Part shown: in pieces, positions 23,061 to 60,472 of the stretch
Layout: each line of letters opens with the position of its first letter
How positions within the stretch are numbered: position 1 is the first letter of the stretch
Source: Octopus sinensis
Lineage: Eukaryota
DNA: 64,000 bases
NCBI RefSeq assembly: GCF_006345805.1
Contig: NW_021836125.1
Span: forward strand, 183,315-247,314
Direction: 5' to 3'
Position numbers and translations under genes: made by a program
The notes under the pieces: model-generated
Told to the model about the DNA's origin: nothing
The model's input: the letters and a program-made list of their open reading frames with translations, nothing else
Databases searched by the model: none

Positions 23061-23582
23061 AGCGCAATCAGAAGAATTTGCGTAAAAATATTAACTATTT
23101 AGTTAAGTTTTTCGTAAAGATAGAATTTATTTTCGGATGCCTCTTTTCCTAAACTTTTTTATTATTCAAAAATAATTTTTTCAATAGATAACCGAAGGAG
23201 GGAAGACGAAGCTGAAGAAAAAACGGTCAGCTTAAGGTAATTAATTAAATCTTTTTTGTGCGTCGCTTTTTTGGCTGCTGCTACTCTGCCTGCCCAATCT
23301 CCGCCAGTGGTTTGTCTAATCAAGGTCACTAAGCTAAATCTCCGGACTATAAAGGCTCTTAAGCATTATCTTAATTGGCTGTTAAAAAAATTAGACAGGT
23401 TGTTGCCGTGGCGGCAGAGATTTTTTTTGTTTATACTATTTCACAAATTTTTAAAGTTTTTTTTTGTTTTTTTTTTATTTTTTTGTTTTTAAATTATTTA
23501 TTTTTATTTGTTTTTTTTATTTTTTTGTTATTTTCTAAAAATTCAACCGGATTGAATTTTTAAACTCCTTAGATCCCTTGGA

Positions 23583-23909
23583 ATGCCGAATCATTTTTTA
23601 AAGTTAAAGATAGGCGTTCCAGTGGTTTTATTACGAAATCTTGCGCCACCTAAATTATGCAACGGAACGAGGTTAGTTATCAAAAATTTGATGGATAACG
23701 TAATAGAGGCGACGATATTAACAGGTAAGTATAGAGGTGAGGATGTATATATTCCACGAATTCCGATAATTTCTGATGAATTACCATTTAGATTTAAAAG
23801 GCTGCAATTTCCTTTGAGGATGAGTTTTGCAATGACAATAAACAAGGCCCAGGGACAGTCATTAAAGGTAGTTGGGTTATTTTTAGAGAGTGAGTGCTTT
23901 TCACATTGA
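23583..23909 (+). pseudogene. Helitron PIF1-type helicase C-terminal fragment
   Basis: MPNHFLKLKIGVPVVLLRNLAPPKLCNGTRL...IPRIP...FKRLQFPLRMSFAMTINKAQGQSL...FSH*KLYV, with a stop in the HGQLYV motif. Confidence 0.92.
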
Positions 23910-24617: not shown

Positions 24618-27050
24618 ATGCTAAAAATTCTAGCATTTATTCTAATTTCTGCTTGTTGGAGTGAGAGCAGTATTTTAAACAGATAGAAATCAGTTTCACG
24701 AGATCTACAGAAGAATCCAATGAAATCCCACCTTTTTCACCAGGGACTTCACCTGACGCCATGGTCAAGTTAATTAAGCTTATAACACAATTTAGAGAAA
24801 ACTTAAATTCTCAAGATATGGAACAATACCCATTTAAAGCTGATGTTAAAAATATGATGAACGTCATAATTCGGTCAATCTACAAAGTTCGAGATGTACC
24901 CTACTGATCATCAGGCTAATTCTAGATTTTTGTCCGAGAACTTATATCAAACGGTTCAGATGCTTGTGACAAAATCCGAATGTTAGCTTTAACGGACCCT
25001 TCTGTTTTGGACACCAATCCTGAACTTAAAATAAGAGTCAAAGTCAATGATTTTAGTAAATTACTTTTTAGGCAAATTTGGAAAATGGGACTCTGACATT
25101 TGAAGACACTGGAATTGGAATGACAAAAAATGAACTTATTAATAATCTTGGAACCATAGCCAATTCAGCAACAGCAAAATTCCTTGAAGAATTTTCGAAA
25201 AATGAGGCTGAGAATTTGGAAAATGATTTAATTGGAAAATTTGGAGTTGGATTTTATTCTTTGTTTCTTGGTATTTGGTTTAATGCAGTTCCTAGTGGCC
25301 GACCAAGTAACTGTCGTTTCAAAGTCGAATTTTGACGATCAATATATTTGGACTTCCGACTCAAAGAGTTTCAATATTGTCAAAGACCCGGATGGAAATA
25401 CTTTGGGAAGAGGAACTCGCATAATTTTTCGGCTGAGAGAAGATTCGACACATTTTATAAAAACCCAAAAATTAAAAGAACTGATAGAAACTTATAGTCA
25501 GTTTATTAATTATCCTATCTATTTGTGGCAAGATGTTATTTTTTATTTTTATATTCACAGGGTCAAGAAGAAGAGCAGTCAACAGGCGGAGAATGGAAGT
25601 ACGTAAATCCTGTTAAACCGATTTGGATGCAAAAGTAAATATGTAAAATTGATGTGTAGTCCATTGGATGTAACTGAATTAGAATATGCAGAATTTTATA
25701 AATCAATCACGAAGGACACTGAAAATCCTCTCCATTACATTCACTTGAACGTAGAAGGCGAAGTTCCTTTTTCTGCCATAATTTTTGTTCCTTCAGAAGT
25801 TTTTAGTAACAGAGAACATACAATCGGGAAGAAATTAAGCCATTTTCGGGTTGTTCTAATCCCATGACACACTAAACTAATTTAGCTGTATACCAGACGC
25901 GTTTTTATAACTGACTCATTTGGAGACGAAGAATTCATGCCAAGATATTTAAATTTCCTTTTCATCATAGTCAATTCGGAAGATCTCCCGCTTAGTGTGT
26001 CTCGAGAACATTTACAGGAAAGCAAACTACTCAAGTTAATACGAAGAAAAATAATAAAAAAGACTCTCCACTCATTTGCAACCAATGAAGTTGTTATGGG
26101 AAAAATTTGGAACCTTTATTCAAATAAACTTAAACTTGGAATTGATGAAGACGAAATTAATAGAAATCGTCTAGCGGATATTTTGCGATTTCCTAGCTCC
26201 AAAAACCCCAACGAGATGACAACTTTGAAAAAATACATTTCTCGTATGGAACCTGATCAGAAGTCGTTATATTATTTTGGTGGAAGCAGTCGGATAGAGG
26301 TAACAAAGTCTCCGTTTGTGGAACTTCTCTTCAAAAGAAACATTGAAATTATATATTTGTTTGAATCGTTAGACGAGCATCTATTGGGAAAATTAGAGAG
26401 TTATCGTGGGATCTCACTAGTCAATATCGCACTTGCAAACATGGATGACCTGTTTGACAAAAATGACCTGAAAGAACAAATGGAAACTTATAACAAATTT
26501 TACTCAAAGTTCATATCAAAATCAAAAACAATTCTCGAATCAGCACTGAATGATGTAGTTATTTCAAATCGCTTAATTTCTTCATCTTGTATTGTAAAGG
26601 GAGATTTTAATGGGGTATCTGGAAATTTGTTGAAATTTATTACTTCTCAGGCACACGAAAAAAACGATTTAGCCCAAGCCAAGTTTGATTTATAAAAATG
26701 AAATTTTCAGTTATTTTAAACAATTGAAAAAAATTATGGAAATAAATCCATTCCATCCAGTTGTCAAAAAACTCAAAGAACAGCTCGATGTTCTTTTTTT
26801 TATTTATTTTTAGTTTGAAGAAGAACCTTCCGAAGAATGGATTGAGAATTTAAAATTCTTTTACCAACTGTGTGAAATCCGGTCTCAATTTACTCCAAAA
26901 GACCTGTCCCAATTTGCAATAAGGGCAGAAAAATTTTTGAAGGCGGGATTTGGAATTTCAGAAAATAATGAAGTTTTAGAGACAGTAGATGACAACATTT
27001 TCAAAAAATACTCGACGAATAACGGCGATTCGTTAAGTGTAGAATTATAG
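24618..27050 (+). CDS. HSP90B1: Endoplasmin / GRP94 (ER Hsp90), divergent; signal peptide, C-terminus SVEL
   Basis: Hydrophobic N-terminus [12 protein letters not shown]; [19 protein letters not shown] (30-nt intron), [55 protein letters not shown]. Stop at 27048-27050. Confidence 0.9.
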
Positions 27051-29909: not shown

Positions 29910-30290
29910 TGACAGATTGACAAAATTTGCCGTACGACACTGTTTGTTCCCAGGCGATCACCCAGCCAAGTACTAGAACATGCTGTAATCGCTTAACTGC
30001 CGTGTTCGATTGGGAACGGGTATTTACGACTAAGTATGATCGTACGTTACTAATAAAATTAATTATAGAGTATACGTGTGTTTTGACCTCTTCTATTTCC
30101 CCCCCTCCCGATTACTGTGGAGCCTGGTTTGCTGCAAGTTAGTGTAGCATTTTCGCCGATAAGAGTCGACGCAAGTGGCATCTCAAACTAGAAGCTTGTC
30201 CTTTTTGCCGGTAATAGTCGTCCGAAGACTTCCGATTTGGAAGACTTTATTCAATTAAGTTTTTTTAAAGCTACTATTGAATAACTCTCT
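29910..30290 (-). mobile_element. Old CRE-like retrotransposon REL remnant
   Basis: KLLV*DATCVDSY...PFPIEHG...WLGDRL, homologous to the intact copy at 30363. Confidence 0.55.
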
Positions 30291-32864: not shown

Positions 32865-34820
32865 ATGGATTCGTGTTATGTGTCCGCACATGATCTTAAA
32901 AAATTCTCTAAAACATTATTAAAATGCAAATACGAAGGTAAATTTAAATATATTTTAATTAAAAAATCAGATATAGATAAAATAAAGTCGTTTATTCAAA
33001 TGGCCCTTCCAAAAGAGCGAATACCAACTATTGTTGCCAAAAGAATGATTAAATTTGTTATAAAAAATATATATATCAAAATTAAAGACTGCTTAATAAC
33101 TATTGCCAAATTTTTGGTGATTTCCTTCGAATTTATTGAAGAAAGTCACGAATTGAGACAGTTTTATGGACATTTAGTGTCAATAATAAACACTCGAGGT
33201 TTATCTGAGCCTATATCAATACTTCTTTGTCTTCTCACAAAGAAATCCGATGTAAACCCTCATGTAATAAAACACATCGAAGAACTTTCAGAATCTAATG
33301 TTAAAAACTATTTATTTAAATTTAGTCCGATGTTTTTATCCTTTTGAACAAATACAGAAATTTACAACAAAATCTTCCCACTGTAGTCATTATATTGTCA
33401 ATTTTTAGTTTAAAAATATTAGTTTTGATTTACATAATTGGTCAAAGCGACTTATACGACATTATGAAGTGGTTGAGATCCCAGAAGTCGGTCCTTACCA
33501 TGTTTTTAATATTTCAGTTGAGTCCCAACCTTCATTTGAATGGCTACATACTAATGATCTCACACAAAATATGCTTGATGACTTCCTAGTAAAATCTATC
33601 GATCGAAACTACTACAAAATGTTTCATCTTTCTAGTTTTTGTTTTTTAACAAATAGAATTGTTGACCCAATTAAATTTAACCTTCCCTCTTCTCAGTTGT
33701 ATGTGTCATTTCGCAGAATATTTTAACGTTTGTTCAAAAAATAATTTTTTAGGAGATTCCTGAATCGTGTGCCCGGTTTGTCCTCCGCGTAGTGAAACGG
33801 CGGGATTTTCATTTTCTCAGAGCCGAAATACTCCATCTCATTCCTTATTTGCCTCCTATGGGTTGATCTCTCATTTTTTCAATTTCAGACCTTCAAAGTG
33901 GCATATTTCTTTGTTTTCGAAGAATTTTGTTGTTCACTACATCGGAAGAAGCGAATATTTATTTCACTGTTTTTTACAGACTTTTTAACAATTGGCTACA
34001 ATATGGGGGACCCTTTGTTGTAATTTGCGTTAATTTTAGTATTTTAGTTCGCAGAATGTGGTACAGAGCGATGTTGACGCATTTATAGTCGAACTCGTCG
34101 TTTTTATGTCCCGTCTAGGCGTTTCGTATTTAAACATTCTCACTTTACGTTGTGATGTTGCCACATCCATGCTCAGATCAACTGTGCTGATATTTCTTCA
34201 TACTGTTTTTGGTTATTTGCTCATTTGAAAAAGGTCTTCACTCTTACTTTGATTCGTGATGCCGATGTTTTTTATTTATTGTTTGTGTACTTGGTGTTTT
34301 GTGATGATCTGACGCTGGTCATTCCGTCTCTTTCCTTGTTTACTGAGTATTTGTATGTTTTGAATATTTTTCTAGTGCCTACTTATTTTGGGAGAGTAGA
34401 CAAGATGTTCATGTACTTTCTTAGGTGATAATTTTAGTTTGAAAGAATCAAGTTATTGATGGCGGATATTATTGCTGTTCTGTGGAATGGGGGGAGTTCT
34501 GAGTGTGTTACTAAACTTATTTATTTGGTAAATCCTCGTTTGCAGGGAGGTTATGTGGAGTCTTCACTTATGACCCACCCCGCTTTTGAGAGCATTGTTG
34601 CTGACTATATTGGCATGGTTTTGCTTGGTGTCTTTCAAGTTATTTTTAGGATGTGGATTGTATTAATGCTGATGTTTGCGGAAGTCTTTTAGTATTTTTT
34701 GTTTTTTAATTATAGCCATCTATGAGGTTTGGCTTTCTTGAATATCTCCTCAAAAGAAGTTTTGTCTATAAACCGATTTTTGATTTATTGCGTTATTTTG
34801 ACAATTTTCATGTTCATTGA
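32865..34820 (+). CDS. CENPI: Centromere protein I (Mis6 family)
   Basis: FLVISFEFIE..ELRQFYG..LSEPISILLCLLTKKSDVNPHVIKHIEEL matches human WLVAMFDFID..NLLYG..VCHLLYLLTKKENVKPFRVRKLLDL. C-terminal SLMTHPAF matches VVHHPSF. Stop at 34818-34820. Confidence 0.8.
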
Positions 34821-35099: not shown

Positions 35100-36345
35100 A
35101 ATTTACGCTAAAACATATTTCATATATAAACGAATCTGGAAAAACGATTCAAACGTTTCTTCCCAATGCTAGTGATACGAATGATTTTTCATTAAATGTA
35201 CCGAAGCATTTGTTCTAGCAAATATTCCGTTATATAAACTAAGAAATCCTGCCTTAATCAATTTTTTTCAATACTATCGGATTCATGTTACCTTCAGAAT
35301 CCAAATGTAAAAACAATGTCAATATCACGATAGTACTGCAACACGCCACGTAATTTGACGGTAGCGTGGTTTGGCGTATAGTCAGGATTCCTAAAAATCA
35401 TGATTTTTTTGATTTTAATCAGATTTATTTAAAAGCCTGTAAATAAAGACAAGTTTGGCAGATATGAAACTTGCTTATATTCTACTAACACTTCTTTTGG
35501 TGCTGTAGAACATCTCGAATTTGTTTAATTTGTCCAAATCTCGTCATAAAATCTTGTTTTCCTTCTCGTCATAAAATTGGTGGTCCATTACTCGATCAAG
35601 TGTACGACTAACTACATGAGAACTGTCGACAAAGACTTTAGGACAAAACAGTGTCTATGGTGTTGGCTGGATGAATTAACACTTATAATGAATCTCGGCG
35701 GACAGAGTGAGATTTCCGACCGAAAACGTGTCCGAACAGATAGAATCCCAAATAAGGGATTTCTCCTGCTCGTATGGGAAGATGGACATACCGTCTGGCG
35801 TTTGCCGTCACCTGTTACTTGTGTTTCGGTTGTAACATCGGATGGAGAAAGCTATCTAATTGACACTGTAGACACCTTTGGACACAGACACATTGCAGAG
35901 TATCTTGAATCTGTTGCATTAGAATATACAAGTCTGGCGAGCAACAGTTTGGATGTAAAATCGGAAGTCTTGTGATAAACAATCCAACCACCATGACTAA
36001 AATGAGGCTGATAATGATGCAAAATGACTGTGAAATCTTACATATGGCTGCTCGACACATTATTCAACATTCTCGCAAAAAATGTAGAAGTAGCGACGTT
36101 AAAGAAACCATCGTAAAAATACATAGATACTTTCGAAATGTCCATCTTCCAGTCGCAGCGGTACAAATTTGCTTGAGGAAAAGAACTTGTTCTTCCAATT
36201 GATGTTTCCTGGAACACTTTATCAGATTGTTTTTAATCTTATCTGGATAATTGGTCTACAATTTTGAGAATTTGTGAAGAACACAGATCCGATATTGATA
36301 CAGGTATTGCTTCCAAAGTCCAAAATATTCTCCTAAAGAATATTT
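35100..36345 (+). mobile_element. Decayed hAT transposase remnants (two pieces, interrupted by a CRE fragment)
   Basis: EAFVLANIPLYKLRNPALINFF at about 35200; IHRYFRNVHLP..DVSWNTLSDCF..ICEEHRSDID at about 36120-36300. Confidence 0.6.
35580..35830 (-). mobile_element. CRE-like REL remnant
   Basis: Nucleotide similarity to 30720-30830 (GTCCGA..AG.TAGAATCCCAAATAAGGGATTT, GGCGTTTGCC.TC.CC). Confidence 0.8.
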
Positions 36346-36399
36346 GCGGCTGATTTTTTCAACTTTTGGATTTTTACATTTGATTTTACGAACTTCAAA

Positions 36400-37185
36400 T
36401 TATCCAGTCAGCCTGTAGAATTTTTTGTTCGGAATTTTGTTTTGCCAAGAATAATCAAAGTGTTTTCTTAGTTGGTCTCTGTAAAAAGAGTAAGTTGTTT
36501 CATGTCTTCTTTTGACGTTTTTCCAAGTGCCTGCGTTGTACATGAAGACTGGTCGGACAAATGCGTAATATAAGCGCAGTCGCATCTTCGCATAAATTTG
36601 TTTTCTTCTTAATAAAATCGATTGTAATTTTTTGAGTGCTATTGTGGCTAAGATCTTTCTTTGTTTAATATCTTCTGATTCGCCAAGTAAATATCCGAGT
36701 TTTCTGGCGTTCCTCCACTTCTCCACGTAGGTAGGCATTCGTTCAATAGTGGTTAATTATGTTTTATCTTCATTAACTTTGAGAGACAATTTGCTCAAAA
36801 TTGTTTTCTCCCAATAATGTCTATAAATTCCCGATTCTTAGCTACAAATCGATATCATTCGCGTAAATAAGTTGCGTTAAGATTTTTGATTTGTTCTCTC
36901 AGATCTCTCAAATCTGCTTATAGATAATACGGGTGATAGCGTATCTCCTTGTGAGGTTCCAGCATTGGTAGAAAATGGTATAGACTTCTTAGAACCAACT
37001 CTGACGAGTAGTTCAGTTTCAGACAATAATATGTGTATTATGCGGAGACTGTCTTCATCGATAATGTCTTTCAACACGATAAGTAATTTACTCCTGTCGA
37101 ATGCCTTACTTTTATCGACTCCTAGGATATGAAAAGATCGTTTGTACTCCTGACATAATGCAATTAAAATGGAGGATTTATGCAA
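36400..37185 (-). mobile_element. RTE-like LINE reverse transcriptase remnant
   Basis: ILGVDKSKAFD, GTSQGDTLSPVL, RKLGYLLG..DIKQRK..LRLYYAFVRPVFMYNAGTW. Confidence 0.85.
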
Positions 37186-38039
37186 TAAGTACTACTTCAA
37201 CGTTAAAACAAGTGTTATACGGGCCGTAATAAATTCATGTGAAATCTGTAATTTTTCTCGATGTGGGTCATTTTCTCGCGGTGGTAAATAATAGTTTTTA
37301 GCTACAAAAAGACCCACTCGGGCTCTTTACCCTCTCTGTTGACCACATCGCTTGCAACTTATTTTTTCAAAGTAAATTTCTGGTATCTAGACGGCGTGAT
37401 TGTCAGGACCCACTGATGTGATTGTCAATGATATCTCCAAAATTATTTCTGGTTTCTCAAAGATTGGACTCTCCTTAGACGGCAGAAAATGAGAACTCGT
37501 AAATATTTACGTACTCCTCCATTGATATCCTGGTCGAAAGACTACGACTCACTACGAACAATGATTTGGTTATACTAGGCTTGCCAATTTCCGAGAGGGG
37601 CATAGTTAAAGCCTTGTTGAGAAAGTGGGAATAAATTAAGTTGTTAACTGATCGAATAGGTGGTCTTGGTTTCCATTTGGCGTTCTTGTTGACGAATTTG
37701 CTTTTTATTTCGAGGCTTACTTACATCTTTCGTTCATCTCAATGTTTTACTGCAGGTGATTAGTTCTGGGACCGAGGAATTTTTGGATGCTATCGATTCA
37801 TTTATTATTTGAATTTTCTTCTTTAAGATAATTCACAACGATATCGTTTTCTTTGCGGAGCTAACATCTTTTACTTTTTTTTCCAAATGGATTTTTCAAG
37901 TTTATTAATTATTAGAAAATCATCTTATGCGTAGACCTCAATGTGAAACACCCCCTTTTGCTTTCAAATCAGTTGGCGGATACGAGAGGGAAATCTTTAC
38001 TTTCCCAATTGGACAAAAACAATCCTGAACGACCCATCG

Positions 38040-42099: not shown

Positions 42100-44700
42100 T
42101 TTTGTAGTTTGAAAAGCTCTTTTTAGTGCAAGACCATAAATCAGATATGCAAAAAACTTTGAAACGATCTATCTTACTGGAAGAAGTCTTTAGAGCAATA
42201 AAGAAGCTAAAGCATGGTCGCTCTACGGCCCTGGACAACATCATCTTTAAGTTGTTAAAGCCCAGAAGAACCTGGAAATTTCTTGATAACATAATTGTGA
42301 ATAAGGGATACTAATACAGATCCAGCAAGGAAATCAATTTACCTGGCCTGTAGAAAACTTGCGTTTTATCATTCTCCTGAACACCCAGCAGTAGACTTTT
42401 ATCTTAATCGTCGTTGTTTGACTCAAAGATGTGACAGACGATTATTTAGCTTATAGTCAAAATACTTTCAAAACCAGAAGGTCTACGGGTAAAATAGTAT
42501 GGTTTCTATAGCACTGGGCTATTCTGCAAAAATTCCGGAGAACCCAGAATATCCTTGGAATTGATCTCTCTAGAGCAGGGGTGCGCAAGCTTTTTGGGTT
42601 TGCGGCCGCATAGCATTTATTTTTCCTTCTCTTCCACGGCCGCACATTTTCTGCATTATTTTTTCGATATTAATATAGTAATTTTTTTAATTATTAAAAG
42701 TGACCGCATAAGTTGCCCATTGTCATCGAGACCGAATGAGTTCTTGAACAGGAAATGCTCTCGTTCATCAGCGACATCATATTATTAAAATAAATAATTA
42801 TTTCATGGAAAAAAGATAAGAAAGAAGGAAAATTAATTAAAAGAAATGTATTATACAAGTTATTCTAATGACAGCCAGGATCTTTGGTATTTTTTGCGAG
42901 CTTATTGAAATCCACTGGTAGGATAGATATCATTATGCGCAAACATGACTCTAAGTTTGCATCCGTTATCCGAGATCTATATTGACTTTTTAAATATTTC
43001 ATTTTGGAAAATGTAGACTCACATAAATATGTTCTTCCGAATACAACGAGAATATTTCTTGCCAATAACTGATTTATTGTTATACTCTTCTGAGACATAT
43101 TCAGTTAGGCGTGCAACAAATCCTTGTTTTCTACCCAACATTGCTGGTGCGCCATCTGTGCATATTCCTCTTAGACATGTCATGTCCAATTTGAATTCCA
43201 AACAACATTGTTTAACTATTTTAAATATATCTTGACCCCGTACATTTCCAGGTAGTGACTTCATGGATAGAAAATCCTCATGTATTTCAAAATCGAAGGA
43301 TAGAGTACGAATAAATATGATCAGCTGAGCAGAATCACATATATCATTCGACTCATCAATGGCAAGTGAAAATAACGTAGTTTGAGAATTTAATTTTTGT
43401 AGGAGTGATAGATTAAGATGCTCGGCAATATGAAACTTTCGGCGCTGAATTGTGTCACGTGAAAGTGGAATTGCTTCAAAGTTATGCTCCTTGTTGGGAT
43501 CAATGCATTTAACTGATTCCATGATACATCTTTTCATGAGTTCGCCGTCTGAAAAAGGTTTTCCAGCAGATACAAGGATATGAGCAACTCGAAAGGATGC
43601 TTCAACTCTTGCATTTGCCACATTTAAAAAAGTTTTTAAACATTTTTTTTTGTCTTAATTTGTATTTCAAATTTTCGACGGAATCTTCTCTTGAACACTT
43701 GGACTTGACAACTAGGTGGTCTAAATGTCTTTGAAAATGTTGTTTAGCATTGTCCCGTTTTATAGTTTTCACAATCTCATGGCACAATAAGCATTGTATG
43801 CTATTGTTGTCTGTTTCGACTACGAAGTGATATTTTTTCTTTTTCTTAATTCAAAGAACGTCGTCTTTTATTGACATATTTTATTTAATATGGGGTTTTT
43901 CTTGATTTATTAATACTATGAGCATTATATTTAAGATTAGTTGCTCGATGAACTAATTGTGCCCACGGCCGCACATTCATCGACTCACGGCCGCACTTGC
44001 GCACCCCTGCTCTAGAGCTTTTGATATTTTACGTCGAGAAAAAGTGATTGAGATGTCGCAAAGTTTCCTGAATCATGACACAGTTGAATTGATTCGAATT
44101 TTGTTATCTAGAAAAATCAGAGTTCGTGTTGGAAATTATCTATCTCAAAAGTTCTTAACGACGTTTACCATATTTAAGGAAATTTACTGTCTTTTTTGTT
44201 ATCAGAATATATCTGGAATCTGCCATACGGGCGATTGATGACGAATATCTCAAAACTTGATGTTAAAAGAGTTAAACGAATGTACTCACGAAAAACTGAA
44301 ATATTAAAGAAACCCAAGAAACTCACTTTCTCCTAGGAGATTCTGAAGACATTGCAATGAGAAAGTTCCTATCAACGGCCAAAATTTCTAAACCGATGAA
44401 GAAATGGATAGTCAGACACCTGGACGGCCTTTCGCTCCAAATAAGCATTTATAAACCTATCCTGATTTACAATCCTGATAACTGACGAATTTCTGAACTA
44501 GAGAAGGAACTCAACTCATTCCATGGAAAAAACTACGAAATCTCTTGAATTCCGGTGGCTAAAGCTAATAAAGAAGGATGTTTTGTATGGGATTTGTTCC
44601 AAAGACCCTTTGAATCAAGTTATCGAGGGTAGCAATAGAATCTGTTTGTGCATATCCTAATATTAGAGCCAAGCATACTACAGAATGAAGCATTGGATGA
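42100..44700 (+). mobile_element. RTE-like LINE RT remnant split by a hAT insertion
   Basis: AIKKLKHGRSTALDNI; removing 42576-44017 restores NILGIDLSR|AFDIL; later KPILIYN. Confidence 0.8.
42576..44009 (-). mobile_element. Internally deleted Buster/Charlie-type hAT transposon (GTF2IRD2-like transposase)
   Basis: TIR CAGGGGTGCGCAAG at both ends; TSD CTCTAGAG at 42568-42575 and 44010-44017. ORF with KPFSDGE, FSLAIDESND, ICTDGAPAMLG fused directly to the C-terminal YLCESTFSKMK. Confidence 0.95.
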
Positions 44701-44959
44701 CTATTTCAAAAATCTAAGTTGGGTGTCTACCGTCCACGCTTCCCAGGACCCCCTGATGGGGATTTAAAATTTGTCAAAAATATTAGTTCTACTAATATAA
44801 ATTGATTTATTGATAGAATGACAACGTGAAAGTGAAAAAATTGACCAATAAAAACTACTACAAAATTTTCGATAATACCCAAAATTAATATTTTCCTAAT
44901 ACTAATGTAGACTTGTATGATATCCAATAAATTAAAGAAAACTATTAGTAAGGAAATGG

Positions 44960-46811
44960 TTATTGAGCATATTTCACTGCTCGCAGGAAAGAAGTGTAGA
45001 ATGCAGACGGAGAACCGAATCTTGAATTAAATTCTGGGTGGAATTGAGTAGCTACAAAAAAGGGATGGTCTTGCAATTCACAAAAAAATACAACAATCGA
45101 TCTCAACGATCTCCACGCTCATCCGGACTGCCGAAAAGCCAACAAATTTCATCCTTCGACGACAAGAGTTCGAGATATTGCTTATCAACTACTATTTGCC
45201 CACGTCACAACAACCTCATAATTATTAATTGTCGTTCGTGGATGCGATCGGTCTCAAATAGTCCTCCTGTTAAATATATTACGTGATAGTTGTGTTTTTT
45301 TGTAAAAAAGTCATACTCGTCAGGGAATTGGTCGATGAGATGAGAACCTCTTTAGAACCATCTTTCATGCTCAATTCCCCGGCCTCATTTTTTATCCGGG
45401 AAACCTCGAGTTAGAGCAAGGGAAATACCACGGGAAATGGTGTAGTTGGATCGACCTCCGTCGTATTGGCAGATTCCATTCCACAAACATTCCGTGCAAA
45501 CTCGATTATGGCAAATTGCATTCCGTAGCAGATCCCTTAAAGCATTGACACTAACATTTACCTAAAAACGGGATTTTGTTTACTCTAGCATATCCCGCAG
45601 CAAGTCCTCTTCCTTCGGCACCCTTCACGCCTGCTCCTCCAGCACACATAATTCCCCTGTAAATGACCGGTCACTTTCTTACCGACACGACTTCAATAAA
45701 TTCCAAGAAGACGTATGTTCAGGACTTCCTTGATCTTCCAAATCCGATGACTTGATTTTCTGCAAATAATAATGACCCCGCCAACTTTTAGTGTAAAGGG
45801 ACTGTCCAACCAAATGATTGAATGCTGGAAGGCCTCTTGGACTGCGTCGCATTGGTCGTATTCGGTAAATTCGCCCACAACTGCGACCATCAAACCCTCT
45901 GTCTCCAATGTGTCACTTTTATTAAAATGTAGTGCAATACGCATATTTCGCAAACAATTGAGCTGTAATATCAATCATAGGCTTGTCTACAGGTGTAACC
46001 TTCTGTTGTATCAGAGACATAAGGTTCTGTTCTACCAAAGACTTAGGCATTTTAAAAAAGTCTCCATCGTAAGAGAGGATCTACAAAGTCTTCAGAACAG
46101 TACTTTGGGTAATTCTAAATTTGTTCTTTCCCTTTCCGAATGTTTGCTAATAATCTAAGATGCGGAAAAACAGTTACCACATCAGGCGATAAACCAAATT
46201 CTTTAAACTTCTCAACCAAAGTTTCAAGTTGCCTCAAGTTATTGTCGTCGGCCTTAACATCAAGTCATAAGACCAACTTCATCATTCCACACATGTATGT
46301 GGAAAATGCTTTGATTTCCAATTTTAGAAACAAACTTACCAAGAGAGAACTGTGCTAATTCGTTTTTATTTTTCAAATCTCCAGCGCACTACATTGAACA
46401 TGGTATATTACATCAATGAGACATATTTCTGGTACTAATTCATTCCCGGGCGTTTGGGGTGTGTCCAATAGTCGTTGTACAACATGCTCTTGGGCTTCGA
46501 AGGCAGAGTTAAAAGTAGAAGCTGCGTGGTTATTTTCGCAGTAGAGTTGATTTATGGTGATCACATGTGCCCTCGTAAAGTCAATTCCAAGAAACCGTTC
46601 AAATTTGCCGACAGCAACTGAGCAAACCATTCCATCGTTTAATACTGTCATCTCACAGTCTAAGTAGAGTAAAGACGTTACATTCAATTTGTTTTGGAGT
46701 AGCATCAATGTGAATTAAAGTGGTCATTGATGACTTAAGTAGTAATCCAATACTGCAGGTGACCTCTGCTCTAGTAGTTTTATTGTCGCCAGTAATGAGG
46801 ATGTATTTCAT
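44960..46811 (-). CDS. CTP synthase-like protein with degenerate synthetase domain and intact glutamine amidotransferase triad
   Basis: MKYILITG.., [82 protein letters not shown] are collinear with human CTPS1. About 12 GT-AG introns, mostly 22-37 nt; indels are needed only near 45070-45220. Confidence 0.9.
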
Positions 46812-47970
46812 TTCTGCTCGATTTTGAACAATATGAGGAAATAAAAAACAAAGCGAATTAGGCTAAATATACACACCTTATTCTAAACCACAAAAACTCG
46901 CAAAAAATTTCAATCCAGACCAACAAATAATGACTAATTTTTAATTAATGCGTCTCATCTCAGTCTATTTTCATCCTCTCCGAGTCAGAGTCAATTTTTT
47001 CGATGGTCACACACATCCATCTTGCAAGTCAAACTCACTCATTAATATTTTTAAAATTAATTATCTTAATCACATTTTGGCTTAGGTGGTAACGTGCCTT
47101 TCTTAGTTATGTGACGTGCCAGGGCCATTTACTATCGTCTCATTTAGTGATAAGGATTATCAGCGAGTTCGAAACGGAACACTTTGTGCGAGGATCTAGA
47201 TTGTATGTATTTCCGACCCTAACTTTACCATTTTTTAATGTTTTTAAATTTTCGATCATTTAAAATATTTACAAGATAATATTCTTGCTCATTAATGAAA
47301 AGAATATTCGGTACAAAACCAAGAATTACTCAAAAAATTGCTGGTGATTTAAAGAATACAGGAACATTAGTATCCCTTCGTAAATTACTTCTACACTACG
47401 CAATGAAGGTATCAATAAACTAAGTCCCCGTCGTGTTCCGTTATTAAAGAATATACACATTTTTGCACAAATTAAATATGCCGAATATCTTTTAAAACAA
47501 AGAAAATGAATTCATAAACAATATTTTATGGTTGGATGAATCAAAATACAAACTTTTCGGACGGAACTACACCCCTTCAATTTAGCGTAAATCCAATCAG
47601 GCGTATAAACCCAAATGCACCATACCCACCATAAAGCACAAGGGATAAAGTATCATGCTGTGTGGCTGTTTTTCATCAAGAGGCGTCGGTTAATTATTTG
47701 TAATAGATGGAATTATGAATTTGCTCAAATATTGCAAAATCCTAGAAGAATGCCTGTTTCGTTTAGTCCCTGAATTAAATTTAACACAACAATGGACATT
47801 CCATCATGACAACGACCCAAAACATAAGTCAAAAATCACTGTTGAATGGTTACTAAGGAATAAAATAATGTCAATCACCAGACCTCAATCCAATCGAACA
47901 TTTATAGAAAATTGTAAAAATGAAAGTTGGTTTGAGAAAAATGAAAAACATTCACGAATTGAAAACAATT

Positions 47971-50189
47971 TGTCACCGGCTGGATAATGCCCTGGGTTGG
48001 ATAATGCCCCCTCAACGTTATTTTAAAAAAATAAATATTTTTTCAAATTAATTTTGATTAGATTTTTTGATTTTCTTAATTATTTTAGTAATTTATTAAA
48101 GTTTTTTTCAAATTAATCTAGCGTGAAAATTTGTTTTGGTTATCTAAGTTTCCAATTTGAAAAAATAATAAGTATAATCGATCAAATCTATATTTCAGAA
48201 ATGGTTTTACTCAACCTTACCAAAGATGAACTTGAAGTAATCAAAAATATTCAAATAGATGTTTTATATATTGACCGATTTCAGAAATCTGAAAAGAAAA
48301 GATACAGAAAATTAGCAGAACAGTTAATTTTCGAGGAGGAAGGGATAGTATACTTAAAATACAAAAACCAGAGGTTACGCTTTTTTCCCAAAGAAGAAAA
48401 GGAACTTAAACTAAAACTATCGAGGTGATCGTGATCGTTACATAATTATTATAGATTAAACATATGAGGACACATTTTGGAAGAGATAAGTTGCTTTCGA
48501 TATTGAGAAAGGAAATTTATGCAGTAACCCGAGATGAAATTACTGCTGTGATCTCAAAATGCGTTCACTGTCAGGTGCATATGTATTAAATTATTTTTAG
48601 ACAAAAAAGTTGATGGCGACTAAGCCAACAATCACTCCTATTATTGCAAGAGGGCCTAAAGATCGCTATATTGCAGATTTAGTGGATTTAAGAAGGTATG
48701 CTAGCCTTAATAGCGATAATGGATGGGTATTTTTTGTATAAATTGTAGTTGGTTGTGGTTATAGACTCATTTTCTAAATTCGCAGTTGTAAAACTTGCCA
48801 GGCGGAAATCAGCGGAGGAAATTACTAGAAAATTAAAGAACATTTTTTACATGATTGGTCCCCCATTTATTTTACAGACGGATAATGGGAAAGAATTTAA
48901 GAACAAATGTATGGAAAACAATGTGTAATGATCTGAAAATCATACACATAAGTGGACGCCGTAAAGCACCATGGATTCAGGGTCAAGTAGAAAGAGAAAG
49001 GCAAGTTATTTGTAACGAGGACGATTGAGACATGATATTGATGCGAATCCAAATACCGAAAAATACCCTATACGATCAGATTGATTCCACTATATATGAA
49101 ATATCGGAGGTTGATAAAGACAAATGGGTACTTTTGTCGAAGTGGTCGCAGTTTTTTAGGCCTTTTAAAAAATCTAATAATTTTTGAGGTGGAATATATT
49201 ATATTTATTTAAGTCGCTCTATCAATAATTTTAAAATATATTAAATTTTTTACTAATTTATTTTCTAATTTTTAATATTATGGCGAGCATGTACCTAATA
49301 TTGATATAAAACTGGCACTATAGGTCACATGGAAATTTGTTGTGGACTTATGCAACATCAAATTCCGACAGCTCCCAATAAGTAAGGAGGATGCAGTTGC
49401 ATTTTCTGCAAAATTTGGATATCCTTTCAAAATCACGTATATGTCCGAAGGGACATCAGATGGAATTAGTTTTGGGACCGAAGCTCAAAGAGGAGCTGTA
49501 AGACATCATCTGGAATCTTATTTCGCAGGTTTTTTAGTTAGTTATTTTTTCAGAATTTATGTGGCGAAAACAAATACAGAACTATAAGGAATGTTTTGCA
49601 CAGATTGTAAAAGACATAAATTCCTTCTACAGTCCTGGATTTGGATGCCGCGTACTAAAAATGACTAAATTGGTTAAATAAATTTTTAAATAATTTTAAT
49701 AACATTTAAATTATTGATAGAGGGTTATAAATTAAATAATCTATTTTTCACTAAAAAAATTAATTAATTTTAATTATCTTCTAAAAAAAACTGCGACCAC
49801 TTCGACAAAAGTACCGACAAATGCGTACTTAAGATCTTAATGACGAATCATGCAAATATGTACACAAAAGTCGTATAAAAAAATATAACTCTTATAAAAA
49901 AAATTTTTATATAATAAAAATTCATGAATTTTAATATTTTTTTTAAATGGTAGACCTAAAAAATTGTATAATTATAATAAAATACGTTATTGATTCGGAA
50001 AAATTGGTGATGCCGTTTTTGCCGACTCTTGAAAAATTTTTTCAATCAAAAAATGGATAAAAAATTGAATAAATCGAATTAATTCCATTATCAAGTTATT
50101 TTTAATTAATTATCAGGTTATTTTCGTTTGATTTAAAAAAAATTTTAAGGGGGTATTATCCAACCCAGGGCATTATCCAGCCTGTGACA
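47971..50189 (+). mobile_element. Ginger2/TDD-type DNA transposon with an intron-containing retroviral-like integrase
   Basis: TGT...ACA termini; ~40-bp TIR TGTCAC(C/A)GGCTGGATAATGCCCTGGGTTGGATAAT(G/A)CCCC; 5-bp TSD CAATT. H2C2 zinc motif and D-D-E (IADLVD, LQTDNG, GQVER). Introns at 48425-48454, 48575-48600 and 48727-48748. Confidence 0.92.
49127..49815 (+). mobile_element. Merlin (IS1016-like) deletion derivative nested in the Ginger element
   Basis: TIR GGTACTTTTGTCGAAGTGGTCGCAGTTTTTT; 8-bp TSD GACAAATG at 49119-49126 and 49816-49823. C-terminal RHHLESYFA|EFMWRK interrupted by a 25-nt intron (49529-49553). Confidence 0.9.
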
Positions 50190-58299: not shown

Positions 58300-60472
58300 A
58301 TGGAAAAAACTGCAGATTCGAATATGTATCATCAAACTATTGCACACGGAATGTTTGTCGTAAGTTTAATACTAATTTTATCTTACTTAGATCCCTAATC
58401 AAAAACACGCCCTAATTTATTCTTCTCGATAAAAGCACTCAATCTAAGAAGAAAATACATCATATTGTCTTCTCAAAAGTACAGTTTTGCCACCGAAAAT
58501 TTCCTTTGCAAAAATAATTACATTGACCAAATCTATGAGCAGCGGGTTGAAAATAATACACGAATACTGCCGCTAAGTACAGATTTTCATTAAATTGTAA
58601 GATACTTCAGATCTTCATTTAAAAATGAAAAATGGGATTATCGGTATCTTCGACAAAAAACTCGAAGAATATTTTTGACTTATTTCGTACAAGGAATTTG
58701 TATCTGATCTCGAATACATTCAGTCTCTCGTCGAAAACGGAACACTGTATCAAATAAATTAGAAATTGTTTTTCAGTAAAACCTACTGTCACAAACGATT
58801 TCAGTATCTCCAATCCAAGTACTCACTTCACGTCTTGATGAACGATTCTATCGAATCTCTAGAAAGCAAGGGCACTAGTCACAGAGACCTCTACAACATC
58901 AGAAAGGCTTATATATGTTTATTATTTCATTATTCAGGTGGACACCCATATACACTGTGCGTCTGCTATGAATCAAAAACATTTACTTAACTTTATAAAG
59001 AGGAAATTACCTCGTGTCTGATATGAAAGTATATCTCGATTCGAATGGGAAAGTTTCTACTCTCCAAGATATCTTTGACGAACTCAACCTGACTGCTTAT
59101 GATTTAAACATCGACCTTCTTGACATGCGAGCCGTAGTCTGCTATATTCAGTTTTAGGATAAAACTTTTCATCGTTTTGATAAATTTTCAAAAAAATATA
59201 ATCCAATAGGGAAGAGCAAACTGCGTGAAATATTCTTAAAATATAACAACTACAAACAAAGGAAATTATTTGCTGACCTGATTAAAGTATGTTTTGGTAA
59301 TTTTTATAAAAACACAGGAGGTTATATGTTACTTGGAGGAAGAAAAATACAATTGGCGGAATTTCGTCTTTCTATTTACGGAAAATCATATGACGAGTGG
59401 GATATTTTTGGCAAGGTGGTTCTTCATAATAAAATGGAGTCCAAAAATGTACGCTGGATGATTCAAATTCCAAGAATATAGTTTTAAAATTTTAATTTTT
59501 TCTAGCGACGCTCTCCGGTCTTCGAACATTCTGGATAACTTTTGGTCAAATGATTAATAATATTTTATGCCGCTGTTTGAAGTCACTTTAAATCCTGACA
59601 GTCATCCAGAACTACACAGGTCATTCATTTGGTGAATTTCAAATCATTTAATATAATTGTAGATCAGTGGATTTGACTCTGTAGACGACGAAGCCAAAAC
59701 TGTTTTTGACTTTTTGGCCAATTCTACAGTAACTCCAGAGGAGTATAATTCCTTTAAAAATCCAGCATATATGTACTACCTCTTCTTTATGTACTCCAAT
59801 ATTTCTACTCTCAATTCTCTTCGAAAAAATTTAAATCTTTCAACTTTTAACTTTCGGCCACATTGTGGTGATCTGGAAACCCTTTGAACCTTTGCACAAG
59901 TTTTTTATTAGCCGAAAATATTTCTCATGGCCTTTATTAAACAAGGTTTTCCGCTATAATATGTTGATAGGTCCCTGTTGTTAAATATCTTTTCTATTTG
60001 TCACAGATTGGGATAGCAATGTCCCAATGAGCAACAATGCTTTAGTCAAAAAATATAGCAATCATCCATTCAGAAAGTTTTTTGACGAGGGAATGTGTGT
60101 CTCACTATCTACAGATGATCCACTCATGCTTCATCTTACTAAGGTAGGTCTCAAAATGTAATTATCCAAGGATTCTCTCATGAAGAATACAGTTAGCCTC
60201 TCAAGTGTGGAAACTGAGTCTTGTTGATTTGTGCGAAAAATAGCTCTTAATAGCATTATATATTGTGGTTTTTCGGATCAGGTATCTGTAGTTGTAGAAT
60301 CTGTTAGCTCAAACGTGAGTGGGGAGTAACGGTTTGCTCAGATGGGACAATCAATAGTAAAATTGAATTGACAAGCGTACCTACTACTCGTATACACTAC
60401 AGACATTCTTGTCTAAAGGACGAATTAGACATATTAAATATTCAGTCAGATAAGTCAAATAATCTAGACTAA
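58300..60472 (+). CDS. AMPD: AMP deaminase; many micro-introns, several homopolymer frameshifts
   Basis: [25 protein letters not shown]|[57 protein letters not shown]. Start is approximate. Confidence 0.92.

Follow-up and report, generated by a model that had tools for sequence, protein, structure and literature searches.

Gene structure and host organism

The window, i.e. the whole stretch of 64,000 nucleotides that was analysed, carries a gene derived from CTP synthase (CTPS) on its minus strand, as well as genes for TTLL1, PAK, HINT and an HSP90-family protein. The relevant features are the following.

44960-46811, minus strand: CTPS-derived gene of 14 exons, with ATG at 46811 and stop codon TAA at 44962-44960
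46178-46811, minus strand: exons 1-4 (46811-46682, 46659-46412, 46388-46278, 46252-46178), degenerate amidoligase (synthetase) core
45786-46154, minus strand: exons 5-7 (46154-46104, 46080-45941, 45915-45786), end of the synthetase domain, interdomain linker and start of GAT
45317-45759, minus strand: exons 8-11 (45759-45683, 45656-45562, 45535-45429, 45404-45317), GAT core with GGAG, GICYGMQ (nucleophile Cys355) and the degenerate L13 loop ELSMKDG
45267-45316, minus strand: intron 11, 50 nt, long for this gene
45152-45228, minus strand: frame-scrambled stretch, seen in comparison with a second copy
44960-45180, minus strand: exons 13-14 (45180-45095, 45069-44960), QFHPEF with His475 and Glu477
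About 31.47-32.75 kb, minus strand: TTLL1, well conserved

All 13 introns (22, 23, 25, 23, 23, 25, 26, 26, 26, 24, 50, 31 and 25 nt) run from GT to AG, and 10 of the 13 measure 22-26 nt. The product counts 500 amino acids by the window letters, or 504 if three lengths of the second copy are adopted. No stop interrupts the 500 codons and all 26 splice dinucleotides are intact; retention of 12 of the 13 introns would shift the frame, and the 24-nt intron contains an in-frame TAA. The stop codon directly follows the GAT domain, and the C-terminal tail of the aligned animal and fungal CTPS is missing. An initial model, which assumed introns of 16 nt (45282-45267) and 23 nt (45211-45189), was dropped on account of an in-frame TGA. 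A model with a 32-nt intron at 45347-45316 is also open, but is ruled out by the 50-nt intron 11, whose position and phase match those of a CTPS intron in mayfly and wasp. Indels had been suspected at 45070-45220 in the preliminary description; they are partly explained by two introns (45316-45267 and 45094-45070), and a real frame problem lies at 45152-45226.

By sequence comparison, the locus is DNA of a dicyemid, a tiny parasite of the octopus kidney. For the neighbouring PAK, a protein annotated on a 421-kb scaffold of Octopus sinensis shows 98% identity, against 57% for a true octopus PAK, that of O. bimaculoides. It was the kinase domain of PAK that revealed the taxon, an exon of the HSP90-family gene having been uninformative in this respect. 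Intron length (about 25 nt) and GC content (about 35%) agree with those of Dicyema japonicum, which has 36.7% GC and was collected from O. sinensis (PMC6736024). The 22-26 nt introns had raised the possibility of a ciliate that uses a reassigned genetic code, which was discarded in view of the terminating TAA, animal-type transposons and animal neighbour genes. As a side observation, the 421-kb scaffold, which stands in a public octopus assembly with 'Octopus' protein annotation, is itself dicyemid DNA.

Descent from an animal CTPS gene

The spliced minus-strand product had been described as colinear with CTPS from end to end, and with the 14-exon model phmmer indeed matches it to residues 1-494 of human CTPS1 (E 1.6e-56), with end-to-end matches to human CTPS2 and fly CTPS as well. 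Pfam scores on the window reading are 38.8 bits for CTP_synth_N (cut-off 26.1) and 64.2 bits for GATase, so that an amidoligase domain is followed by a class I GATase with homology over the full length, as in CTPS. Introns 1, 5, 6, 7, 8 and 11, and nearly intron 3, have the same position and phase as introns of the mayfly and wasp CTPS genes. Since about 0.09 exact coincidences would be expected by chance (our own arithmetic) and six or seven were found, the gene, on the evidence of its introns, is a descendant of an animal CTPS gene. Plant CTPS genes have no exact intron position in common with it, one same-phase intron lying 3 alignment columns from intron 5.

With animal CTPS (human CTPS1/CTPS2, Drosophila; PF06418 + PF00117) the gene thus shares domain order, length to the end of GAT, colinearity over residues 1-494, the GxCxGxQ nucleophile elbow, HPE and the six or seven intron positions. 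It differs from these enzymes in the absence of the phosphate-binding loop, Lys16/Lys38/Asp70, the UTP/CTP contacts, the GTP site and the C-terminal tail, in the change of Glu145 to Asp, in degenerate GGFG, GGTMRLG and RHRHR motifs, and in a synthetase half that is less conserved than GAT, the reverse of the family norm.

The synthetase half has diverged to saturation, at 22% identity and with animal CTPS no nearer to it than bacterial CTPS. A tblastn search of the whole window revealed neither a further sequence resembling CTPS nor any hidden exons of canonical type. A word-indexed search for orthologues returned 30% identity at closest, with no self match, and an exhaustive search with exon 2 alone yielded three repeat proteins as its sole matches, all of them spurious; neither produced an orthologue from another species. 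An exact look-up of an ORF of the window in public contigs gave no match. The publications on dicyemid genomes and transcriptomes held nothing useful on CTP synthase, K01937 or salvage enzymes.

Loss of the nucleotide and catalytic sites

Motif replacements were read from a 121-sequence alignment, with 120 CTPS, representing all domains of life, as the comparison set, and residue numbering and roles are those of Drosophila CTPS (PMC8325340). The glycine-rich phosphate loop is gone, GGVISGIGKG having become GD--NKTTRA with a two-residue deletion, and KIDPYxNxDAGT is reduced to ----HIDA-T by an eight-residue deletion that takes in Lys38/Asp40. DLDLG is changed to SVAVG and TTGKIY to TINQLY, and ELGGTVGDIES is replaced too. 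The preliminary description of these motifs as replaced or deleted is borne out by the alignment, except that two segments reported as absent are substituted: KTKPTQ reads NLRQLE, with an adjoining four-residue deletion, and the KERKGDYLGKTVQVVPH segment is three residues shorter with its last His kept. The key codons of this half, all on the minus strand, are the following.

46772-46770: R14, normally Lys16
46730-46728: S28, normally Lys38
46615-46613: A59, normally Asp70
46414-46412: D126, normally Glu145
46240-46232: N168-L-R170, the Lys-Thr-Lys of KTKPTQ

None of the four catalytic residues for UTP 4-phosphorylation is kept: Lys16, Lys38, Asp70 and Glu145, each invariant in 120 of 120 CTPS, are replaced by R, S (or deleted), A and D. 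The ATP site, defined by GxxSGxGKG with Lys16, together with Arg216 and Asp312, has lost all but one of its eight contacts (G15 to T, K16 to R, R216 to K), only Asp312 being kept, as D272. The UTP/CTP contacts Ser12, Asp40, His55, Gln112, Thr149, Asp152, Glu154 and Lys192-Thr193-Lys194 have all ten been changed (to N, T, Y, E, D, N, N, N, L and R), among them the Lys-Thr-Lys that holds the triphosphate. Most of the catalytic, UTP, ATP and GTP contact positions are invariant among the 120 CTPS compared. With the phosphate loop, the catalytic lysines, the Asp/Glu pair and the UTP/CTP and GTP contacts lost, UTP phosphorylation, CTP feedback inhibition and GTP activation would all be absent; the synthetase (amidoligase) half is predicted to be catalytically dead and the gene unable to make CTP. 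Residues essential to the ancestral reaction have thus been lost, as is characteristic of a pseudoenzyme.

It could be argued that this is a functional CTP synthase with an active site rebuilt in a fast-evolving lineage. Dicyemid proteins do evolve fast, the HSP90-family neighbour reaching no more than about 40% identity with its best database matches, and K16R and E145D are conservative. However, the loss of the phosphate loop, the deletion of Lys38/Asp40, the replacement of Asp70 by Ala and the change of all ten UTP contacts go much further, whereas in fly CTPS the single mutation K16A or K38A already abolishes most of the activity (PMC8325340). Furthermore, TTLL1, PAK and HINT of the same window are as well conserved as had been noted, with their motifs kept and with PAK and HINT about 60% identical to human. 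A rebuilt synthase can therefore hardly be credited.

The claim that the loss is selective for the synthetase half, beyond what fast evolution alone would bring, is likewise supported, because the order of domain conservation is inverted: identity is 22% in the synthetase half and 33-38% in GAT, against 76% and 61%, respectively, in a normal CTPS (fly versus centipede). Of the alignment columns with a conservation of 95% or more, 21 of 60 are retained in the synthetase half and 31 of 47 in GAT.

The GAT half

The glutaminase triad of Cys355, His475 and Glu477 is complete, with Cys355 in GICYGMQ and the other two as H475-P-E477. The codons concerned lie exactly where they had been placed, at 45530-45528 (Cys) and 45040-45032 (His/Glu), and the relevant positions, on the minus strand, are the following.

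45634-45632: A329, normally the Phe of GGFG
45530-45528: Cys355
45040-45038: His475
45034-45032: Glu477

The GxCxGxQ elbow and the Gly-Gly of the oxyanion hole (G327-G328) are also kept, as is Glu379. The three GAT motifs previously reported as altered are indeed so: GGFG has become GGAG (Phe to A329), GGTMRLG of the L13 loop ELSMKDG, and RHRHRYE, by the window reading, RQLIIMRF. The changes affect the Phe373/Arg376 lid as well as the L13 loop, the RHRHR arginines and the GTP activator site. The GTP site is not retained, eight to nine of its nine contacts (Phe50, Leu107, Lys306, Tyr307, Phe373, Arg376, Leu444, Arg479 and Arg481) being different; the only apparent match, R435 of the window reading, vanishes in the homology-supported reading RQFNNYEV. 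CTPS is the amidotransferase in which efficient hydrolysis of glutamine requires GTP (PMC9138612). Because this glutaminase is normally GTP-dependent, and because the GGFG Phe, the lid Arg, the L13 loop and the RHRHR arginines are replaced, competence of the GAT half as a glutaminase appears doubtful. Of the proposal that a maintained, dead synthetase sits on a live amidotransferase, the dead synthetase thus stands and its maintenance stands with limits (see below), whereas the live amidotransferase appears unproven, given the changes in GTP site, lid and L13 loop.

Comparison with a second copy

A second copy of the locus, with about 98% identity, lies on the 421-kb scaffold of the O. sinensis assembly and covers 44960-46351 of the gene. 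The window is shorter than this copy by 1, 1 and 2 nt at 45226, 45186 and 45152, which scrambles about 16 GAT codons. In the window reading this stretch uses a 31-nt intron (45211-45181), and the frame is open only by way of the alternative acceptor at 45181. If the lengths of the second copy are adopted together with a 23-nt intron (45211-45189), a reading much nearer to canonical CTPS is obtained, with scores rising from 195 to 206 bits for human CTPS1, from 164 to 186.5 for fly, from 158 to 178 for Sulfolobus and from 64.2 to 68.7 for Pfam GATase. The three length differences are probably long-read consensus errors, with real decay as a less probable cause. The second copy in turn has two 1-nt deletions (45644 and 45398) that break the frame of the GAT core. 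It also differs in a satellite, which is represented in both sequences.

44921: point, 40 nt past the stop codon, at which the second copy has an inserted block (about 3.5 kb) of a 96-nt satellite
21176-22645: the 96-nt satellite in the window

Small indels cluster on both sides of 44921, with 10 indels and 3 substitutions in 44322-45644, non-coding flank included.

Maintenance or decay

The coding differences between the copies comprise 8 synonymous and 7 nonsynonymous changes, at an expected synonymous fraction of 0.26 (P 0.023), and in a divergent patch at 45864-46338, which includes exons 5-7, 8 and 5 (P 0.006). This excess suggests purifying selection, with the limit that pN/pS between the copies is low because the locally high synonymous rate is taken as the neutral rate. 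The substitution density in exons (1.4%) equals the intergenic average (1.1%), and the 7 nonsynonymous changes compare with 7.2 expected under neutrality from that average.

These figures bear on the alternative that the gene is a unitary pseudogene, decaying after CTP synthesis became dispensable, with the open frame as a remnant helped by a generous choice of splice sites. Frame-disrupting length differences are present in both copies (three in the window, two in the second copy), nonsynonymous differences are close to the expectation from the average intergenic rate, and two of them, the adjacent G397E and E398K, fall in the normally invariant L13 loop. The indel density in the exons (3.7/kb) resembles that of intergenic DNA (2.9/kb), whereas a single indel occurs in 1764 nt of conserved PAK, HINT and HSP90 exons, and the TTLL1 gene is free of them. 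However, small indels are not specific to this gene, as substitution-free tracts of at least 1 kb still have 1.2 per kb, and the cluster of 10 indels with 3 substitutions straddles the 3.5-kb satellite insertion; real neutral divergence amounts here to about 4 substitutions per indel. Because of these indels in substitution-free tracts and the patchy divergence between the copies, indel density was dropped as a direct measure of constraint. The nature of the assemblies also points away from decay: that of O. sinensis was presumably built from long reads. The D. japonicum assembly merges Illumina and PacBio assemblies, and polishing is not mentioned in its paper (PMC6736024).

Neutral drift to saturation would have broken the frame many times, and yet the saturated synthetase half belongs to a gene with 500 stop-free codons, 26 intact splice dinucleotides and 17 indels relative to canonical CTPS that are all in frame. 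Of the conserved hydrophobic columns, 57 of 81 in the synthetase half (background 41%, P 1e-7) and 65 of 70 in GAT have retained a hydrophobic residue. Together with the synonymous excess (P 0.006-0.02), this makes the pseudogene explanation unlikely; maintenance of the gene appears supported with limits, and it is probably kept for some other job.

Proposed function and related systems

We consider a dicyemid descendant of an animal CTPS gene that has turned into a pseudo-synthetase to be the best explanation, with a probability of about 0.55. The protein would still be made and folded, as frame and splice sites have outlasted a degree of change that would be fatal to an unselected gene, and as the hydrophobic core pattern has been retained and recent changes are biased to synonymous ones. 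The likeliest remaining chemistry would be a nucleotide-independent, probably slow hydrolysis of glutamine or another amide by Cys355-His475-Glu477, for which the dead N-terminal half may serve as a structural platform.

An alternative role is that of a non-catalytic partner, i.e. a regulatory or filament subunit with no chemistry of its own that binds another protein, which may be a canonical CTPS paralogue. Both halves preserve the fold-level pattern, and of the His355/Trp358 filament contact the Trp remains (W314), together with a His that is shifted by one residue (H310; T311 aligns with His355). The KTKPTQ and GDIES segments, which also build nucleotide-dependent tetramer contacts in CTPS, are however replaced at the UTP/CTP site, no canonical CTPS was found in the window by tblastn and none is known from the genome, and a purely structural role would leave the retention of the Cys-His-Glu triad, the GxCxGxQ elbow and Glu379 unexplained. 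A precedent exists in herpesvirus vGAT, an amidotransferase-derived pseudoenzyme that binds its active relative PFAS (PMC12282450). Like the present gene, this PFAS homologue is a retained relative of a nucleotide-biosynthesis amidotransferase that has lost its metabolic activity (PMC12282450), but vGAT is viral, is described as having no amidotransferase activity at all and acts by binding PFAS, whereas the gene described here is cellular, has no known partner and combines a kept triad with a dead synthase half. On balance, we regard a partner role as quite improbable.

A pseudo-synthetase with a remaining hydrolase could rather resemble stand-alone class I glutaminase/amidohydrolase domains, in which a Cys-His-Glu domain may hydrolyse an amide without ammonia transfer. 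CTPS1 itself is reported, in work cited in PMC12282450, to deamidate IRF3; in contrast to such moonlighting deamidases, the residues that line the glutamine and GTP cleft are changed here. No description of a pseudoenzyme derived from CTPS came to light in a full-text search of the literature.

As a further step, dicyemids might be without any working CTPS, the sole ancestral locus having become a glutaminase or deamidase that is blind to nucleotides and sits on an inert scaffold, which we offer as a tentative and rather doubtful extension. If there is no second CTPS gene, CTP would come from salvage of host cytidine. To our knowledge, CTPS is kept even by very reduced parasites, and the catalytic residues are present in all 120 relatives compared. 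The loss of all nucleotide sites from the ancestral CTPS locus of an animal would point to a metazoan that has given up de novo CTP synthesis, a parasite dependent on its host for cytidine; dicyemids would then be, as far as is known, the first animals to live wholly on salvaged cytidine for CTP. If true, this would also be the first CTPS-derived pseudoenzyme known to us with a retained amidohydrolase function, and a natural experiment in which the glutaminase domain of CTPS has been freed from both the synthase and the control by GTP.

Gene structure and descent

The CTP synthase (CTPS)-like gene is laid out as follows:

46811-44960, minus strand: CTPS-like gene, ATG at 46811, TAA at 44962-44960

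It contains 13 introns, all GT..AG (22, 23, 25, 23, 23, 25, 26, 26, 26, 24, 50, 31 and 25 nt), and the window sequence gives a product of 500 aa. The N-terminus, MKYILITG..., aligns with residue 1 of canonical CTPS, and residues 1-494 of human CTPS1 are matched end to end (phmmer, E 1.6e-56), as are all other solved CTPS structures. Pfam recognizes CTP_synth_N weakly (38.8 bits) and GATase with 64.2 bits. Intron retention would shift the frame for 12 of the 13 introns, and the remaining one, of 24 nt, carries an in-frame TAA. The introns of the neighbouring PAK and HINT genes measure 21-28 nt and have GTA/GTT donors as in the CTPS-like gene. A tblastn search of the 64-kb window with four canonical CTPS queries revealed neither further CTPS sequence nor hidden canonical exons.

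Exon structures were derived for the CTPS genes of the mayfly Cloeon dipterum, the wasp Prorops nasuta and walnut, and the introns were mapped on the protein alignment. Introns 5, 7, 8 and 11 match exactly in position and phase in both insects. Intron 1 has the phase of an insect intron and is offset by one codon, intron 6 has a mayfly counterpart in the same phase two columns off, and a wasp intron lies three columns from intron 3 in a gapped alignment region. Since the exact coincidences are far above the chance expectation of ~0.09 (13 x 10 / 1500), the gene descends from the ancestral animal CTPS gene; an origin as retrocopy or by bacterial transfer is ruled out by the insect-matching introns. 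An equally open 32-nt intron (45347-45316) was rejected, as the 50-nt intron 11 (45316-45267) matches the insects. By descent the gene is a CTPS family member; by function, its product lacks four of the six sequence-defined CTPS features.

Loss of the synthetase sites

The product was aligned with its 120 best database relatives (bacteria, archaea, fungi, plants, animals), all canonical. Residue roles were taken from the cryo-EM study of fly CTPS (PMC8325340), and fly numbers were carried over via Musca CTPS, which has identical numbering.

Table. Functional residues of CTPS (fly numbering) and their state in the minus-strand product, from the alignment
Catalytic K16, K38, D70, E145: here R14, S28 (inside an 8-residue deletion), A59, D126
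UTP/CTP contacts S12, D40, H55, Q112, T149, D152, E154, K192, T193, K194: 0/10 retained
ATP contacts G13, V14, G15, K16, R216, H244, L246, D312: D312 alone retained
GTP contacts F50, L107, K306, Y307, F373, R376, L444, R479, R481: 8/9 altered

The four catalytic residues are each invariant in 120/120 canonical sequences, and the fly mutants K16A and K38A have lost activity (PMC8325340). The apparent retention of the ninth GTP contact is an artefact of a frame-scrambled stretch treated below. As far as the alignment goes, the protein should be incapable of binding or phosphorylating UTP and of using ATP through the canonical loop, and its CTP and GTP regulatory sites are lost. The motif replacements listed in the preliminary description are borne out by the 121 sequences with two corrections: KTKPTQ and the KERKGDYLGKTVQVVPH segment, both listed there as absent, are substituted (the former by NLRQLE) and not deleted.

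Among columns conserved to at least 95%, 21/60 are retained in the synthetase half against 31/47 in the glutamine amidotransferase (GAT) half. Canonical CTPS of insects, fungi, bacteria and archaea alike share 21-23% identity with the synthetase half and 33-38% with the GAT half, whereas normal enzymes give 76% (synthetase) and 61% (GAT) between fly and centipede and 50% and 41% between fly and bacterium. The order of conservation between the domains is thus inverted, the usually better-conserved synthetase domain being the worse one here, at saturation.

The glutaminase half

The residues of the glutaminase triad are found at:

45530-45528, minus strand: nucleophile C355 in GICYGMQ, retained
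45040-45032, minus strand: H475 and E477 in QFHPEF, retained

The triad is thus intact, as was first proposed, and the GxCxGxQ elbow, the Gly-Gly of GGAG, Q359 and E379 are also kept. The lid residues are replaced (Phe373 by Ala, Arg376 by Lys), the L13 loop reads ELSMKDG and differs between the two copies of the locus (G397E, E398K), and the GTP-site arginines of RHRHR are altered. At the ammonia gate, Gln and Tyr stand for E. coli Pro54 and His57, with the Val60 equivalent retained. The C-terminal tail of the aligned animal and fungal enzymes is missing; of the His355/Trp358 filament contact, the Trp persists as W314, with a His displaced by one residue.

The product would then be a folded protein with the class I amidotransferase triad as the sole catalytic apparatus left. 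CTPS is the one amidotransferase of which the glutaminase requires GTP for efficient hydrolysis (PMC9138612), and because lid, L13 loop and RHRHR are altered, any glutamine hydrolysis would lack regulation and probably proceed slowly, or the enzyme may now act on another substrate; protein deamidation has been reported for amidotransferases including CTPS1 (cited in PMC12282450). Full-text literature searches revealed no CTPS-derived pseudoenzyme, and dicyemid papers and their supplements make no mention of a canonical CTPS elsewhere in dicyemid genomes. The nearest concept is vGAT, an amidotransferase-derived viral pseudoenzyme (PMC12282450), of which the glutaminase is dead, whereas the CTPS-like protein retains the triad.

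Source of the DNA

The PAK query retrieved a 98% identical protein, labelled 'PAK 3-like [Octopus sinensis]', on the 421-kb scaffold VCDQ01003741.1, while the PAK of a genuine octopus, O. bimaculoides, shows 57% identity. A 24-kb piece around the scaffold PAK (L002) runs colinear, at ~98%, with window 26147-46351 and represents a second copy of the locus. Animal introns shorter than 30 nt are described only for myxobolid myxozoans and Dicyema (PMC13644364), and the D. japonicum genome (36.7% GC, 49% repeats) was obtained from a pooled sample from O. sinensis with 1.24% heterozygosity (PMC6736024). In view of the PAK identities, the short introns and these D. japonicum traits, the window is dicyemid DNA, most probably from D. 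japonicum itself or from a very near relative of it. The scaffold, part of GCA_006345805.1, is parasite contamination in a host assembly, which extends to the annotation with its 'octopus' PAK.

Transposon remnants occur at 7822-8337 (minus), 23556-23906 (plus), 36403-37191 (minus), 43022-43654 (minus) and 47694-47984 (plus); by eye these seem to be pogo/Tigger-like, Helitron/PIF1-like, LINE reverse transcriptase, hAT-like and Tc1/mariner-like, and their large number is in line with the 49% repeats of D. japonicum. Within a GC-rich block at 28-31 kb, the remainder of which is retroelement-like, sits a full-length 5S rRNA gene (29929-30047, minus; Rfam RF00001, 84.6 bits). Exons at the left window edge (128-1028, minus) were assigned, by eye only, to a translational GTPase similar to the selenocysteine-specific elongation factor eEFSec.

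Comparison with the second copy

L002 covers the 3' end of the gene up to 46351 (codon 140 to the end). The exons show 15 substitutions, 8 synonymous and 7 nonsynonymous (pN/pS 0.24), where the spectrum of 171 non-genic differences predicts a synonymous fraction of 0.26 (P = 0.023); a divergent patch at 45864-46338 (synthetase end and linker) has a ratio of 8:5 (P = 0.006). Divergence is patchy, with most 500-nt windows at zero and a few at 2-8%, so that densities cannot be used to compare genes, which leaves the ratio of synonymous to nonsynonymous changes as the one informative measure. Over window 26147-46351, kilobase tracts without substitution are interrupted by 2-8% patches (e.g. 33647-34147, 35647-37028), a mosaic suggestive of recombining haplotypes or of a consensus drawn from pooled individuals.

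Small indels between the copies number four in exons (45152, 45226, 45398, 45644) and two in introns of the gene. Relative to L002, the window lacks 1, 1 and 2 nt at 45226, 45186 and 45152, respectively. When the L002 lengths are adopted together with a 23-nt intron (45211-45189), the product aligns there with canonical CTPS, and the bit scores increase: 195 to 206 for human CTPS1, 164 to 186.5 for fly, 158 to 178 for Sulfolobus, 123 to 136 for E. coli and 64.2 to 68.7 for Pfam GATase. The window copy thus carries a frame-scrambled stretch of ~16 codons. Indels had been suspected at 45070-45220, and the scrambled codons (45152-45226) lie much where expected, but the 500-aa frame is still open, solely via an alternative acceptor at 45181. 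L002 in turn lacks one base at each of 45644 and 45398, two sites at which the window follows the frame that homology supports.

Substitution-free tracts of at least 1 kb (8407 nt in total) still contain 10 indels (1.2 per kb), so technical noise exists. A cluster at 44322-45644, non-coding flank included, has 10 indels against 3 substitutions and spans both sides of a 3.5-kb insertion of 96-nt satellite that L002 has at the point matching window 44921; outside it there are ~4 substitutions per indel. The O. sinensis assembly is presumably a long-read assembly. The window sequence presumably stems from the D. japonicum assembly, which merges an Illumina and a PacBio assembly and whose paper leaves polishing unmentioned (PMC6736024). 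From the noise, the clustering and the assembly types, we would attribute the length differences to consensus errors next to a structural polymorphism and take a 504-aa composite, with the L002 lengths at the three sites, for the true product; less probably, the differences are real frameshift alleles. The satellite block (L002 19348-22823, ~3.5 kb) lies 40 nt downstream of the stop codon; the same satellite forms 15.4 tandem copies (96% match) at window 21176-22645.

Constraint and rate of evolution

The protein differs from canonical CTPS by 17 indels, 17/17 in frame. Where at least 90% of CTPS have a hydrophobic residue, so does the product at 57/81 positions in the synthetase half (background 41%, P 1e-7) and 65/70 in the GAT half; of the conserved polar or glycine columns, identity is kept at 21/69 and 38/54, respectively. 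As hydrophobic columns hold while polar and glycine columns change, the fold was probably retained, and the ligand-binding residues are lost. Had the drift to 22% identity been neutral, 500 codons, 26 splice dinucleotides and 17 indels would not all still fit one frame.

Table. Conservation of the CTPS-like product and its neighbours
HINT vs human HINT2: ~59% identity (own count), 151 bits over 114 aa
PAK kinase domain vs human and mollusc PAK1-3: 57-63% identity, 347 bits over 282 aa
HSP90-family exon vs best database matches: ~40% identity, 194 bits over 260 aa
CTPS-like product, whole, vs human CTPS1: 0.39 bits per residue
Synthetase half vs PDB entries of that domain alone: 0.21 bits per residue
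GAT half vs PDB entries of that domain alone: 0.56 bits per residue

TTLL1 appears to share long recognizable motif blocks with human TTLL1. The lineage is thus fast for some proteins, and general rate alone does not explain the inverted domain pattern; the earlier argument that fast evolution does not account for the selective loss is thus upheld by the HINT and PAK identities and by the difference between the halves. The HSP90-family gene (25232-26692, plus), for which HSP90-beta and endoplasmin give about equal scores, is far more divergent than PAK, HINT or TTLL1; in the second copy its long conserved exon has a 1-nt deletion at 26356, most likely an assembly error. Exons at ~59000-60200 (plus), which by eye we take to encode AMP deaminase, have well-preserved motifs, so this second nucleotide-metabolism gene of the window is presumably not degenerate.
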